A DNA stretch of 60,313 bases from Macrostomum lignano (lineage: Eukaryota), in NCBI GenBank assembly GCA_002269645.1, contig NIVC01001910.1, forward strand, positions 1 to 60,313. Direction: 5' to 3'. Numbering within the stretch: position 1 is the stretch's first letter; the number at the start of each line of letters is the position of its first letter. Under the pieces are notes generated by a model that was not told the DNA's origin, searched no databases, and saw only the letters and a list, made by a program, of their open reading frames with translations. The translations under genes and the position numbers were made by a program. Shown here one piece after another: positions 4,972 to 10,683 of this stretch.

Positions 4972-5652
4972 ATGATAAAGCGGTTAATTATTAAAACCAG
5001 CAGCCACAAATGCCTACTTCTAATAGCAGCCGTTATTCTGGCAATTTTCGCCAACACATCTGGCGCAATTTCACGGAGCTGTTCAAGAGGCTCCTACTTC
5101 AACAGCTTGAGCGGCATGTGCGACCCCTGCCCAACAGAATGCTTGACGAGTCCCCAGTCACCAAACGTGACCGATTACATGCGACGGAAGTGCCAGAAGC
5201 TGGCAGACCAGTGTTCACCAAATCTAGCGACTAGCAAGTCCGGTTCAACCTCATCAACGCCAACATCTGACAGTCCAGTGAGTAAGAGTCCAAAAAACTC
5301 TGAAGCCGGAGTCAACAATGAAGACAGGCAAGCACCGCCAGACGATCGCTATGGTCATAAGGCTGCTGGTGGGATTGTTGGAGCTGCTATTCTACTGCTT
5401 ATTTTTGTCCCAGTCGGTAAAAAGCTGCGATCAATAATAATTCGAAATAGAAGACCTGGAGAAAGCAACATACCGATGCAGAACATCAAGGAAAACTCAG
5501 ATGCAGCTTCAGCCACCCTGCTCTCTGGCTCGAATAATACTCAAGAACCGAACGGTTTTCAAATTAATGAGGAAGCAACTGCCGACGACAAAGTTACCAG
5601 CCAGCCTGACAATCCACCTGAAGACCCTCCAGCAGTACCTAATGTTGAGTAA
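4972..5652 (+). CDS. Single-CRD TNFR-like (BCMA/TACI-type) type-I membrane protein, paralog 1, 226 aa
   Basis: Signal peptide; CSRGSYFNSLSGMCDPCPTEC...C...C; Ser/Thr/Pro stalk; TM GGIVGAAILLLIFVPV then basic residues; acidic tail. Confidence 0.75.
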   Translation: MIKRLIIKTSSHKCLLLIAAVILAIFANTSGAISRSCSRGSYFNSLSGMCDPCPTECLTSPQSPNVTDYMRRKCQKLADQCSPNLATSKSGSTSSTPTSDSPVSKSPKNSEAGVNNEDRQAPPDDRYGHKAAGGIVGAAILLLIFVPVGKKLRSIIIRNRRPGESNIPMQNIKENSDAASATLLSGSNNTQEPNGFQINEEATADDKVTSQPDNPPEDPPAVPNVE

Positions 5653-6374
5653 GCATGCACGCATCCAGTCACTTATCATTTAGGCATGGTGAACCAATTG
5701 ACTAATGATGGAGATGTTACTACCATAACGAACGACGCATAATGGGCTTGAGAAAATACACAAGTAGCTAATGTAGCTTATGCGTACTTAAATTTCGTAG
5801 CATAGGACACAACTTGTGCCATAGACGAAACAGGCGTGATGACACCGCGGCATTAAAAATCGGCTTCAACTTTTCGTCTTTATTGGCCCTCTGTGTACAA
5901 GTACTCTGGTAGCGTCCTTCTAAAGGTACTCCGATCCAGTTTTCACTGCATCTAGTAAATGTTGGATTGGCAAAGCTTGAACCTAACGTTTTATACTTAG
6001 TACTGCAATCTGTGAACAAAATGTATTATTTAAATTGTACATGTTTTACTGTGATTACTACTGAATTCAGCTCGTATGCAACAGCATTAATATAAAGTAC
6101 ATTCTAGTTCATAATATTGCAATCAATCTATTTACCCCATTCAATTGTCAATTCGTCAGTAAACGTTGCGTAGTTCTAAAACATTGGCTTGTCATTTGAA
6201 AATATCTGAAAGTAACTGTTGTTTATAGTAAACACTAACACAATTCTAACACTAATTAATTGAATGTATAATATATAGTCAGTTGAGTCAGTTAAGTAAT
6301 GTACTGTGTAGTATATTCCGTAGTGTGTAGCAAACAGAAAAATACTGTTATTGCTGTTAGTCTTCATTTTCCGC

Positions 6375-7166
6375 CTGTCTGTCTGTCTGTCTGTCTGTCT
6401 GTCTGTCTGTCTGTCTGTCTGTCTGTCTGTCTGTCTGTCTGTCTGTCTGTCTGTCTGTCTGTCTGTCTGTCTGTCTGTCTGTCTGTCTGTCTGTCTGTCT
6501 GTCTGTCTGTCTGTCTGTCTGTCTGTCTGTCTGTCTGTCTGTCTGTCTGTCTGTCTGTCTGTCTGTCTGTCTGTCTGTCTGTGTGTCTGTCTGTCTGTCT
6601 GTCTGTCTGTCTGTGTGTCTGTCTGTCTGTCTGTCTGTCTGTCTGTGTGTCTGTCTGTCTGTCTGTCTGTCTGTCTGTCTGTCTGTCTGTCTGTCTGTCT
6701 GTCTGTCTGTCTGTCTGTCTGTCTGTCTGTCTGTCTGTCTGTCTGTCTGTCTGTCTGTCTGTCTGTCTGTCTGTCTGTCTGTCTGTCTGTCTGTCTGTCT
6801 GTCTGTCTGTCTGTCTGTCTGTCTGTCTGTCTGTCTGTCTGTCTGTCTGTGTGTCTGTCTGTCTGTCTGTCTGTCTGTCTGTGTGTCTGTCTGTCTGTCT
6901 GTCTGTCTGTCTGTCTGTCTGTCTGTCTGTCTGTCTGTCTGTCTGTCTGTCTGTCTGTCTGTCTGTCTGTCTGTCTGTCTGTCTGTCTGTCTGTCTGTCT
7001 GTCTGTCTGTCTGTCTGTCTGTCTGTCTGTCTGTCTGTCTGTCTGTCTGTCTGTCTGTCTGTCTGTCTGTCTGTCTGTCTGTCTGTCTGTCTGTCTGTCT
7101 GTCTGTCTGTCTGTCTGTCTGTCTGTCTGTCTGTCTGTCTGTCTGTCTGTCTGTCTGTCTGTCTGT
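6375..7166. repeat. (GTCT)n microsatellite, ~790 bp
   Basis: Directly visible. Confidence 0.99.
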
Positions 7167-7670
7167 TTGGCCATCAATATTTGGCAGGTAATCATTCGCT
7201 ACGATGTTTGGTAGTCTCTAATAAAATATTACCAGTCTACTAGGTACTACTTCCAAAAATGCAGTCGCTAACACCTAAAAAAGGAAAAACCAAAGGCCCA
7301 ATAGTACGTCTGCCAGCAAAGTTCCCTTTTTCGCTGTACAGAGCTATGCTGTACATTTATCAGCTCTGTCTTCGCAGTTCTGTCCAAGCGTAAATGTACA
7401 CTTACGCCTAAACTATGTAGGCGTTGACTGGCTCTGCACAAGTGAGTGGCAGAGGACTAGCTCGCATCTGGCTTGGGTAAAGTCTAAAAATAGATCTTAT
7501 TTACGCTTCAAGAGAACCCCAATCCCGACAGTTTACAACCTGTACAATCTGGCAAGCTCTAAATGTACGTAGCAAGCTTTCAAAGAGGAATGACTGCACA
7601 CAGAAAATATGGGCTTGACTACTTGTTATTTCTTTTATAATTTTTGACTGTTGACGAATAAAAGTTTAAT

Positions 7671-8288
7671 ATGGCTATCAATCTGCGCGCACAGTCAGGG
7701 ATATTGTGGGCTTTTGTATGCCTGTACATAGTCTCGAGGGCTTCGGCAGTTCCAGCGGTGACGAGATGTCGCGCAGACCAGTACTACAACAGTTTGAGCC
7801 AAATATGCGAATCGTGTCCAGAGGAATGCCTGCTCGGAACAGTTAGAACAGCTTGCACTGGCATGGCTAGCCAATGCCAACCGCTGACAACAACTACTCT
7901 GACCGTTGTGACGACGCATGAAGTGACGACAACAAGTCAGAACTCGTCGGGCGCTGACGTGGAGAACTCGTGGATCATCATTGTCCTAACAACGATTGGC
8001 ATCCTACTGTTCTGTTTGTTAGTCTTTTTATTTTGTAGATTCTTTGCTTTTAAAAGAATGGATAAATATTTGAGACTAAAGCTGCACCGAGCTGGAGAGG
8101 CTACAGTGCCAGCACCGGAGACAGCTGGGCCTGAAGAGTCGGAGCCTTTGGCAAAGGCAGCATCGGCATCATCCTGTCAAGAACGTGCAGAACAACACGA
8201 AGTCAGTGCGCAGGCTAGCGCTGGCCAACACGCTAAAACCATTTCTGCACCAAAAATTCCAGGACTCGATGCAGATGATCGTTATTAA
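7671..8288 (+). CDS. Single-CRD TNFR-like type-I membrane protein, paralog 2, 205 aa
   Basis: Signal peptide; CRADQYYNSLSQICESCPEEC...C...C; Thr-rich stalk; TM WIIIVLTTIGILLFCLLVFLFC; cytoplasmic tail. Confidence 0.78.
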   Translation: MAINLRAQSGILWAFVCLYIVSRASAVPAVTRCRADQYYNSLSQICESCPEECLLGTVRTACTGMASQCQPLTTTTLTVVTTHEVTTTSQNSSGADVENSWIIIVLTTIGILLFCLLVFLFCRFFAFKRMDKYLRLKLHRAGEATVPAPETAGPEESEPLAKAASASSCQERAEQHEVSAQASAGQHAKTISAPKIPGLDADDRY

Positions 8289-9251: not shown

Positions 9252-9590
9252 CTACTGACAAAAGTGACATTCTGACATCCTGACTGTACTGACAAAAGTG
9301 ACATTCTGACATCCTGACTACTGACAAAAGTGACATTCTGACATCCTGACTGTACTGACAAAAGTGACATTCTGACATCCTGACTGTACTGACAAAAGTG
9401 ACATTCTGACATCCTGACTGTACTGACAAAAGCGACATTCTGACATCCTGACTGTACTGACAAAAGCGACATTCTGACATCCTGACTCTACTGACAAAAA
9501 TGACATTCTGACATCCTGACTCTACTGAAAATAGTGACATTCTGACATCCTGACTGTACTGACAATTATAGTGCATGACTTCCTGACATA
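9252..9590. repeat. 34-bp minisatellite (ctgacaaaagtgacattctgacatcctgactgta)
   Basis: Directly visible. Confidence 0.97.
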
Positions 9591-9729
9591 CTGACTGTTA
9601 CTGACAATAGTGAAATTCTGACATAATGATTATATTGAAAATTTTTAGTAAGAAACAGGGTTCTGTGTGCACCCTGGCGCACTTTAGGCTACATGTACAT
9701 TGTCACACAACCAACGAGAGGAATTTCTG

Positions 9730-9826
9730 CTCATTCCGCCGACTCCCCTGAGCAGGCACACACTCACAGGAGTGTACAGCGGGCCATAAATTTATTTTCG
9801 AGCGTATTGTTAGGCATGTGCACTTC
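9730..9826 (+). repeat. Short dispersed repeat (gcaggcacacactcacaggagtgtacagcgg...aggcatgtgcact)
   Basis: Related copies at ~1855-1935(-), 14327-14447(+), 27063-27105(-), 27447-27490(-), 42575-42660(+). Confidence 0.75.
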
Positions 9827-10017
9827 ATGTTGACATCCTGATTATACTGGTAGTCTACGAGCGTATGACTAGCAGAACCAAAGCTGACTAGCTAACAAAA
9901 ATGTTAAAGTTTCTTGATTAATTGATTCGATACTTTAAAATATACATCATGTTTATTTGTAAGATTTAATATTCACATGGCTGTCTGAGCCAGGCATCAG
10001 ATGACAGTCTTTTTTAA

Positions 10018-10683
10018 TCAAAGTACACTTGGCGCAGATGCGTTACCAACGATTCGCTCAATAGAAGCCGAAAAACTTGTTGTCTCGGCTAACACATATT
10101 TTCCGTTGTCTTTGTCGCCTGGGGTCTTGGTTGGCACAGCAGCACCGGTCACCAGAGAATGACTCTCGCCTTTTTCCGCGCTTCTGGCTGCTTTTTGTTT
10201 CGTCGACTTCTTATTTTGAAGCACTACAGCCAAGATTGTAGCAAAAGTCCACAAAATTAATAAAACTGTAACCAGTATAATAACTTTATGCCAGGTAGCG
10301 AAGACCGGCTTTGATGAAGAAGTTTTTCCAAAACTGTTCAGCTTTTGAGGATCACTGATTGACCTCTCGGACAATGCGGCGATTCCACGTGCACTGCTGG
10401 TGTAAACAGCTGTTGTTGTCAACCACAAGCAGTAGCCAGCTCTCCACAGCTTCTTGCACCGCAGCGACCAAGAGGGGCTGTGAATTTCATTGCAGTGCGG
10501 GTTGAGGCACTGCGCAGGGCACGACTCGCAGGTTCCAGACAATTCGCTGTAGTAACTGGCTGGAGGACACACCGCGGCCTGAAGCATGTACGATCTGATC
10601 CGCATTGTCATGCATTGTGTCAAACTCACCGATGCCATCAGCAAAACTATGAGCCTTAGGCTAAGTTGACAGCTTACAAACAT
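10018..10683 (-). CDS. Single-CRD TNFR-like type-I membrane protein, paralog 3, 221 aa
   Basis: Signal peptide; CPPASYYSELSGTCESCPAQC...C...C...C; stalk; TM VIILVTVLLILWTFATILAVVL followed by QNKKSTKQK. Confidence 0.75.
   Translation of the reverse strand: MFVSCQLSLRLIVLLMASVSLTQCMTMRIRSYMLQAAVCPPASYYSELSGTCESCPAQCLNPHCNEIHSPSWSLRCKKLWRAGYCLWLTTTAVYTSSARGIAALSERSISDPQKLNSFGKTSSSKPVFATWHKVIILVTVLLILWTFATILAVVLQNKKSTKQKAARSAEKGESHSLVTGAAVPTKTPGDKDNGKYVLAETTSFSASIERIVGNASAPSVL

Follow-up and report, generated by a model that had tools for sequence, protein, structure and literature searches.

Contig NIVC01001910.1 of the flatworm Macrostomum lignano (assembly GCA_002269645.1) was analysed over its entire 60,313 bp, hereafter the window, with a focus on three genes that encode the proteins P1, P2 and P3, type I proteins whose single cysteine-rich domain (CRD) is best explained as a CRD of the TNF receptor (TNFR) superfamily. 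An earlier, sequence-only reading of this DNA had described a tandem trio of divergent, intronless genes for BCMA/TACI-like receptors in an invertebrate. The host is indeed an invertebrate, and three open reading frames (ORFs) were confirmed at 4972-5652 (+), 7671-8288 (+) and 10018-10683 (-), each running from Met to stop, so that the term intronless holds for the coding sequence (PAA77626.1, a relative of P2 introduced below, is likewise annotated as contiguous). The genes and the parts of their products are listed here, with each CRD described by its cysteines and the number of residues between them:

4972-5652, + strand: P1 gene, a single Met-to-stop ORF of 226 aa
4972-5064, + strand: P1 signal peptide, ~aa 1-31, from hydropathy
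5080-5214, + strand: P1 CRD, C37-C81, spacing C12C2C3C16C6C
between CRD and transmembrane segment, + strand: P1 stalk, Ser/Thr/Pro
5362-5421, + strand: P1 transmembrane segment, aa 131-150, from hydropathy
aa 151-226, + strand: P1 tail
7671-8288, + strand: P2 gene, a single Met-to-stop ORF of 205 aa
7671-7748, + strand: P2 signal peptide, aa 1-26
7767-7877, + strand: P2 CRD, C33-C69, spacing C12C2C3C8C6C
between CRD and transmembrane segment, + strand: P2 stalk, Thr-rich
7971-8051, + strand: P2 transmembrane segment, aa 101-127
aa 128-205, + strand: P2 tail
10018-10683, - strand: P3 gene, a single Met-to-stop ORF of 221 aa, inverted relative to P1 and P2
10612-10683, - strand: P3 signal peptide, aa 1-24
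10429-10569, - strand: P3 CRD, C39-C85, spacing C12C2C3C4C11C8C, with an extra seventh cysteine
between CRD and transmembrane segment, - strand: P3 stalk
10219-10287, - strand: P3 transmembrane segment, aa 133-155
aa 156-221, - strand: P3 tail, C-terminus -SVL

The three proteins share one layout: an N-terminal hydrophobic signal-like segment, a CRD with a common motif, a Ser/Thr-rich stalk, one transmembrane segment followed by Lys/Arg (a positively charged inside flank) and a tail of 66-78 aa. Coordinates, hydropathy and cysteine positions bear out the signal peptide, motif, stalk and transmembrane segment that had been read into each of them. The motif, C-x4-Y-[YF]-x2-L-S-x2-C-x2-C-P-x2-C, appears as CSRGSYFNSLSGMCDPCPTEC in P1, CRADQYYNSLSQICESCPEEC in P2 and CPPASYYSELSGTCESCPAQC in P3, with two additional cysteines after each instance, and a six-frame translation of the 60 kb window contains it at these three sites only. 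No further copy of the family was detected in the window by tblastn with five paralog types, two of which lie elsewhere in the genome and are described below. Pairwise identity among P1-P3 is 23-27% overall and 33-42% within the CRD, and BLASTP alignments of 133-157 aa link P3 to P1 and to the fourth paralog type (E 1e-5 to 1e-11). Some paralog pairs align through the stalk and the transmembrane segment, and the likeness therefore reflects old, real paralogy and not a chance motif; the description of the genes as divergent paralogs was apt. A death domain, at an estimated ~80 aa, is longer than any of the three tails, and a Pfam search found none in P1-P3, in agreement with the sequence-only reading.

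Two features are particular to P3. Its seventh ectodomain cysteine, C64 (in CLNPHC), is unpaired; all three genomic copies retain it, and it could take part in a disulfide between molecules. Its C-terminal -SVL, present in all genomic copies, resembles a class I PDZ-ligand motif.

The trio is intact, in the same order and orientation, on three contigs: the window itself, NIVC01000732.1 (locus L001) and NIVC01001096.1 (locus L003). L001 is ~90-95% identical to the window across the whole 14 kb, non-coding DNA included, while L003 is 99.5% identical over P1-P2 and ~91% over P3. The L003 P3 protein agrees with the L001 allele at most variable residues, a pattern that suggests a mosaic or recombinant haplotype or else an exchange between homeologs. 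P1 is identical on NIVC01001096.1 and shares ~84% protein identity with its copy on NIVC01000732.1. P2 is 89% identical to its homeolog PAA77626.1 (A0A267FV64, 208 aa), which NCBI annotates as a contiguous 627-bp ORF (L001:10001-10627). P1, P3 and the window's own P2 sequence were absent from the protein collection searched, and two of the three window genes (P1 and P3) seem to be unannotated.

Comparison of the window with L001 informs on selection. Coding regions differ by in-frame indels only, and the aligned block of 3.5 kb that spans P1 with its flanking DNA shows 35 gap openings. The ratio of nonsynonymous to synonymous substitution rates (dN/dS) is 0.37 for P2 and 0.35 for P3, with nonsynonymous changes below the neutral expectation in both (P=0.004 for each). 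For the pooled CRDs, the corresponding ratio of proportions (pN/pS) is 0.41 (P=0.045), and every CRD cysteine is conserved between copies. Changes in P1 concentrate in the signal peptide (4972-5064) and the tail (5422-5649), the CRD and stalk being conserved; the tail carries ~23 nonsynonymous and ~2 synonymous changes (pN/pS ~4, one-sided binomial P=0.043). From the conservation of the copies, the in-frame indels, the dN/dS values and the conserved cysteines, it follows that the trio are maintained genes.

The family extends beyond the trio. An exhaustive search with a CRD profile recovered three further M. lignano proteins, PAA55891, PAA94563 and PAA55817, which represent a fourth paralog type; their CRD, CPPHQYYYELSKMCDNCPEKCLSGSSTPECERLWSGDFC, has the spacing C12C2C3C8C8C, and the proteins are nearest to P3. 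A fifth type, CQPDEYFNKITYLCDKCPPECLKAGPAPDICEQKRANGYC, with the spacing C12C2C3C9C8C, lies 3.3 kb downstream of the fourth on NIVC01000006.1 (locus L002), where the two form a tandem cluster:

L002 10001-10612, + strand: first of two paralog types, NIVC01000006.1
L002 13959-14669, + strand: second of two paralog types, NIVC01000006.1

Both L002 ORFs are without an in-frame upstream Met and signal peptide, so that a 5' intron is probable there, unlike in the trio. The family is thus lineage-expanded, with five or more paralog types spread over two or more tandem clusters. Its consensus is C-x4-Y-[YF]-x2-[LI]-[ST]-x2-C-[DE]-x-C-P-x2-C-L-x(7-15)-C-x(6-8)-C, where the 15-residue loop of P3 contains the extra cysteine. 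Word-indexed protein searches with P2, P1 and a four-sequence alignment matched solely M. lignano proteins.

Searches with the CRDs revealed a weak but consistent TNFR-type similarity. When compared by phmmer with 177,635 PDB sequences, the P1 CRD matched BCMA only (10 sequences, best E=0.045). As a yardstick, human BCMA finds TACI at E=0.14-0.17 in the same PDB search and TACI finds BCMA at 0.08; the resemblance of P1 to BCMA therefore equals that between BCMA and its accepted paralog TACI. A profile of the five paralogs retrieved eight PDB sequences, all TNFRSF members, with CRD1 of EDAR at the top (E=0.079) and BCMA at 0.86-3.3. The EDAR alignment, to C-x4-YYN-x-L-x3-C-x2-CP, spans 20 residues, namely the A1 hairpin and the first CxxC only; EDAR itself, which binds EDA, has three CRDs and a death domain. 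Because the family profile prefers EDAR CRD1 to BCMA, the signal is one of A1 modules generally. Comparison by hhalign with an alignment of PDB-verified BCMA, TACI-CRD2 and Fn14 sequences gave P=1.3e-4 and 3.8e-4 over 25-27 columns. UniProt/UniRef names the P2 homeolog A0A267FV64 a 'TNFR-Cys domain-containing protein', a name that presumably derives from a PROSITE profile rule. The PDB matches of the P2 CRD were scorpion peptides (E>=0.2), which we dismissed as noise from the cysteine pattern.

AlphaFold (AF2) models of the CRD, with a mean confidence score (pLDDT) of 74 for P1 and 67 for P2, both contain a beta-hairpin, a short helix at CxxxC and a second helix, with strands at model residues 13-16 and 21-24 in the two models alike. 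Foldseek placed BCMA at all of ranks 1-13 for the P1 model, and 19 of the 24 matches of the P2 model were BCMA, TACI, BR3, TNFR2 or Fn14. Only the hairpin fits BCMA well, with a deviation of 1.7-2.9 A across 21-24 residues. Lower Foldseek ranks include cysteine-rich regions of the insulin receptor and HER3, and EGF domains. In the A1/B2/C2/D2 module nomenclature of Naismith & Sprang, the A1 module C-x2-G-x-[YF]-x(4-9)-C is present exactly in P1, and P2 and P3 keep its Tyr and the 12-residue spacing without the Gly; the disulfide that would close the hairpin is a prediction. The second module has four cysteines and two predicted helices.

How close the trio comes to BCMA and TACI can be read from the individual positions. 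Human BCMA (TNFRSF17) and TACI, through its CRD2 (TNFRSF13B), are likewise type I receptors that use one six-cysteine CRD and have no death domain, and their arrangement of hairpin and helix-loop-helix is like that predicted by the flatworm models. Spacings are C12C2C3C8C3C in BCMA, C14C2C3C6C3C in TACI CRD2 and C12C2C2C8C2C in Fn14. The first four cysteines of BCMA are spaced as in all flatworm paralogs and the first five (C-x12-C-x2-C-x3-C-x8-C) as in P2, so the match in spacing to which the sequence-only reading had pointed holds up to the fifth cysteine (C12C2C3C8C3C in BCMA vs C12C2C3C8C6C in P2). BCMA Y13, F14 and L17 align with the hairpin Tyr-Phe/Tyr and Leu of the flatworm proteins. 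In an HMMER alignment to BCMA, the triplets at the position of the ligand-binding DxL are NSL in P1, NSL in P2 and SEL in P3, just as had been read from the sequence, and YEL and NKI in the two further types, the Leu/Ile being kept throughout. BCMA differs, however, in the spacing before its last cysteine (3 residues vs 6-8 in the flatworm), in the second-module loop (8 residues, vs up to 16 in P1 and P3) and in its tail, which is unrelated to the flatworm tails. The flatworm proteins also have a signal peptide, whereas BCMA is not known to have a cleavable one. BAFF and APRIL are not known to occur outside vertebrates.

Fn14 (TNFRSF12A) offers another comparison, with a single six-cysteine CRD, an A1 hairpin of the same length and the same start CSRGS, a short tail and no death domain. 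It ranks low in Foldseek (33 and 22), gave no sequence match, and is spaced C-x2-C-x2-C...C-x2-C where the flatworm proteins have C-x2-C-x3-C...C-x6/8-C. Drosophila Grindelwald (Grnd), too, is a type I receptor of an invertebrate that has one CRD and a short tail but lacks a death domain; it binds an Eiger/EDA-clade ligand as a 3:3 complex. Its CRD has eight cysteines, forming an X2 hairpin with two intercalated disulfides and a C2 module, C-x3-C-x11-C-x3-C, and folds into a hairpin plus two antiparallel helices (PMC8024323). This hairpin with two helices resembles the layout predicted for the flatworm CRDs, but those have six cysteines (seven in P3), two of them in a one-disulfide, A1-type hairpin, and depart from the eight-cysteine Grnd pattern. 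Grnd was not among the 50 Foldseek matches listed for P1 or the 24 for P2, nor did any sequence search return it. Judged from cysteine positions, the putative layout, with one disulfide in an A1-type hairpin and two in the second module, is that of BCMA, TACI CRD2 and Fn14, unlike that of Grnd. A broader class of 'grnd-like' invertebrate receptors has been delimited by a single CRD, a CXXCXXXC signature and a transmembrane segment within ~80-120 aa of the CRD (preprint 10.1101/2024.07.27.603686), and the trio falls within it, with the signatures CDPCPTEC, CESCPEEC and CESCPAQC and transmembrane segments that start 32-50 residues past the last CRD cysteine.

The claim of BCMA/TACI-like TNFRs can therefore be kept in one part and not in another: a single CRD of TNFRSF type is supported by P1 phmmer, the family profile, Foldseek, hhalign and the UniProt name, whereas a kinship specific to BCMA/TACI is not, as EDAR is preferred, the Asp of DxL is absent and the Pfam cut-offs are not reached. 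The profile search that had been proposed as a check was similarly divided, with weak matches to BCMA and EDAR on one side, and on the other no Pfam cut-off reached and no vertebrate BCMA/TACI or insect Grindelwald found. We hold with moderate confidence that the trio are TNFR-superfamily-type receptors, without a death domain, that engage TNF ligands of the species itself.

A number of results weigh against this assignment. The exhaustive CRD-profile search of 1.84 billion proteins returned no vertebrate BCMA/TACI, no insect Grindelwald and no TNFR of any other animal at E<1e-3, and the best of its matches from beyond Macrostomum were not TNFRs but repeat proteins whose units are furin-like or peritrophin-like. 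In Pfam, searched with full-length proteins and CRDs, no curated family threshold was reached by P1-P3: TNFR_c6 (PF00020) gave no match at E<=10 for any paralog, BCMA-Tall_bind (PF09257) scored the P1 CRD at 14.1 bits (E=0.051), under its cut-off of 27, and neither BCMA-Tall_bind nor TACI-CRD2 matched P2, P3 or the fourth paralog type. CBM_14 scored P1 slightly above BCMA, at 17.1 bits (E=0.006, cut-off 22.1). In the PDB, the P2 CRD, the P3 CRD and a three-sequence profile found no TNFR. Foldseek E-values were >=0.19 throughout, with template-modelling scores (TM-scores) of 0.35-0.5 and a root-mean-square deviation of 4-7 A over the full CRD, and the AF2 models, built on 3-5 sequences, are of moderate confidence only. 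AF2 was, we assume, probably trained on BCMA/TACI structures, in which case the fold evidence would not be independent of the sequence resemblance. The Asp of DxL, a BAFF/APRIL contact, is absent in all five paralog types (N/N/S in P1/P2/P3). By eye, no TRAF2 ([PSAT]x[QE]E) or TRAF6 (PxExx[acidic/aromatic]) motif is common to the three tails, the sole TRAF-motif candidate being SCQE of P2, which is retained in the P2 homeolog. Finally, P1 shows no overall purifying selection, with a dN/dS of 1.9 vs its L001 copy that is not significant.

These points lend themselves to other explanations, among which a look-alike deserves the closest attention: the CRD might be a generic disulfide-rich module of furin-like, GCC2/ephrin-receptor-like or peritrophin-like kind, of convergent or deep origin, that binds a non-TNF ligand. 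The top non-Macrostomum matches of the exhaustive search are of just this kind (multi-repeat proteins with C-x4-YYN-x4-C-x2-C-x3-C units, and peritrophin-A proteins), CBM_14 and Ephrin_rec_like both touch P1 below their cut-offs (E=0.006 and E=0.52), the insulin receptor, HER3 and EGF domains appear at lower Foldseek ranks, and no TNFR threshold was reached. The CBM_14 match, however, is confined to P1 and to profile positions 26-47 of 53, that is 22 positions covering the hairpin, it stays below cut-off with no match in the other paralogs, and the six-cysteine pattern of CBM14 does not fit. Furthermore, the PDB searches that yielded any TNFR yielded TNFRSF members exclusively, despite the very many EGF, furin-like and toxin domains in that database; Foldseek put single-CRD receptors of the TNFRSF first for two paralogs; and one CRD followed by stalk, transmembrane segment and short tail is an architecture known from BCMA, Fn14 and Grnd rather than from repeat proteins. 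Altogether, we regard a look-alike module as somewhat unlikely.

If the TNFR-type assignment is retained, the trio might go further and be true orthologs of the vertebrate BAFF/APRIL receptor lineage (BCMA/TACI), in which case this receptor type would predate vertebrates. BCMA is indeed the best single PDB match in both sequence and fold, P2 equals it in spacing through the first five cysteines, and the hairpin Tyr-Phe/Tyr and Leu align to its Y13, F14 and L17. On the ligand side, the EDA cluster includes APRIL and BAFF (PMC7674686), and Eiger, human EDA and the M. lignano ligands share Clade 7 of the preprint. We nevertheless find orthology improbable: the family profile matches EDAR CRD1 better than BCMA, the last cysteine spacing is 6-8 residues vs 3, the DxL Asp is missing, neither the BCMA nor the TACI model of Pfam is matched at its cut-off, the search of 1.84 billion proteins found no intermediates in other phyla, and domains of forty residues are too short for an orthology argument. 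It is barely credible that the trio are ORFs that arose by chance, or pseudogene copies in decay, within a duplicated genome full of repeats. P1 and P3 do have no NCBI gene model in the protein collection searched, P1 has a dN/dS above 1 vs its homeolog, and the region is rich in micro- and minisatellites that generate spurious ORFs. Yet nine of nine ORF copies are intact on the three contigs, even though nucleotide divergence is 5-9% and the flanks carry many indels, coding indels are all in frame, P2 and P3 are under purifying selection, all cysteines are conserved, and each protein has a complete signal peptide, CRD, transmembrane segment and positive inside flank; we rejected this explanation on the conservation of the copies and on dN/dS.

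Returning to TNFR-type receptors, candidate ligands are available in the species. M. lignano has 4 TNF-domain proteins in its genome and 6 more in transcriptomes (PMC7519573), and a preprint counts 6 Eiger-homolog ligands in it, together with 16 Wengen-like receptors and 1 Grindelwald-like receptor, and puts Eiger, human EDA and the M. lignano ligands in its Clade 7 (10.1101/2024.07.27.603686). The accession of that single M. lignano 'Grnd' was not found in the text of the preprint or in one supplement. APRIL and BAFF, the ligands of BCMA/TACI, are for their part members of the EDA ligand cluster (PMC7674686).

We infer the disulfide connectivity, ligand binding and signalling of the trio by analogy with the Grnd-Eiger and BCMA-APRIL structures and with what is established about TNFRs in general. 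In the CRD, a single disulfide (C-x12-C) would close a beta-hairpin of A1 type, and two more would hold the helix-loop-helix, C-x2-C-x3-C...C...C, that comes after it, with cysteines paired either 3-5/4-6 (D2, as in BCMA) or 3-6/4-5 (C2, as in Fn14 and Grnd). The hairpin, with its invariant Tyr and its Leu-Ser tip, and the loop between the helices would dock in the groove between two protomers of a TNF-family trimer, for which the 6-10 M. lignano TNF-family proteins of the Eiger/EDA clade are the candidates, and one ligand trimer would cluster three receptors. The short tails, having no death domain, would then recruit adaptors of TRAF type or other, and not FADD/TRADD. This signalling step is the weakest, because by eye no TRAF motif is common to the tails, which offer only SCQE in P2 and -SVL in P3. 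Differences among the paralogs in the second-module loop (8 to 16 residues), the stalk and the tail suggest different ligand preferences or signalling outputs.

Outside the three genes, Tandem Repeats Finder delineated two arrays in the spacers of the trio, and two more minisatellites lie beyond P3:

6375-7166, no strand: (CTGT)n microsatellite, ~198 copies, 98% purity, in the P1-P2 spacer, not part of the genes
9253-9624, no strand: 34-bp minisatellite, ~11 copies, in the P2-P3 spacer, not part of the genes
11248-12653: minisatellite with a 27/80-bp unit, ~52 copies
12829-13616: minisatellite with a 20/194-bp unit, ~40 copies

The long ORFs between the genes stem from the (CTGT)198 microsatellite and the 34-bp minisatellite; the former gives rise to artefact ORFs of 200-340 aa on both strands, and its length varies between homeologous loci. 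The strong GC skew at 10-14 kb, and a spurious 516-aa ORF rich in His/Ser/Ile, are due to the 27/80-bp array at 11248-12653. Further along the window, two adjacent ankyrin-repeat ORFs at 18945-21089 (-) (Ank_2 E=1e-38 and 3e-24), in a GC-rich stretch (0.60), probably belong as exons to a single ankyrin-repeat gene. At 44462-45484 (+), an ORF with a FLYWCH zinc finger precedes one that weakly matches a MULE transposase, and the pair is probably what remains of a Mutator-like transposon. An ORF with collagen triple-helix repeats at 47420-48217 (+) (E=3.5e-14) overlaps low-complexity ORFs and is either a collagen-like gene or a repeat artefact. The stretches 24000-28000, 34000-40000 and 50000-52000 have an extreme GC or AT skew (absolute 0.3-0.46) and GC up to 0.625, which suggests further strand-biased simple repeats. 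No TNF, TRAF or death-domain gene was found among the 20 other long ORFs of the window.

With regard to what was known before, the novelty of the trio had been overstated: UniProt already labels one member, the preprint lists M. lignano receptors, and the trio carries its CXXCXXXC signature. TNFR-type receptors in M. lignano are thus flagged by both sources, and the trio adds members. New are the tandem organisation, the presence of five or more divergent paralog types, several of which seem to lack annotation, and a cysteine framework that is BCMA-like rather than Grnd-like. In the published survey, every platyhelminth has a single NGFR-like TNFR, without diversification (PMC7519573); this locus and the NIVC01000006.1 cluster hold at least five divergent single-CRD types vs that single TNFR and the one Grnd-like receptor of the preprint (10.1101/2024.07.27.603686). 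A broader proposal can be made, which we hold to be unlikely as yet: BCMA/TACI/Fn14-style receptors, with a six-cysteine CRD and a Leu at the hairpin tip, may be an ancient bilaterian type for ligands of the EDA/Eiger/APRIL clade, not a vertebrate invention and distinct from the X2-C2 Grindelwald of insects, which in M. lignano would have expanded as a tandem family that pairs combinatorially with expanded TNF ligands. If true, this would contradict the published view of one NGFR-like TNFR per platyhelminth. As it stands, the finding is an incremental addition to a known superfamily. RNA interference and transgenesis have been reported for M. lignano. If the receptors do bind endogenous ligands, the six-cysteine BCMA-like layout would bear on the pre-vertebrate roots of the vertebrate BAFF/APRIL/TWEAK receptor type, and M. 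lignano would be a tractable, regenerating invertebrate in which to follow the diversification of minimal TNF receptors that have no death domain.

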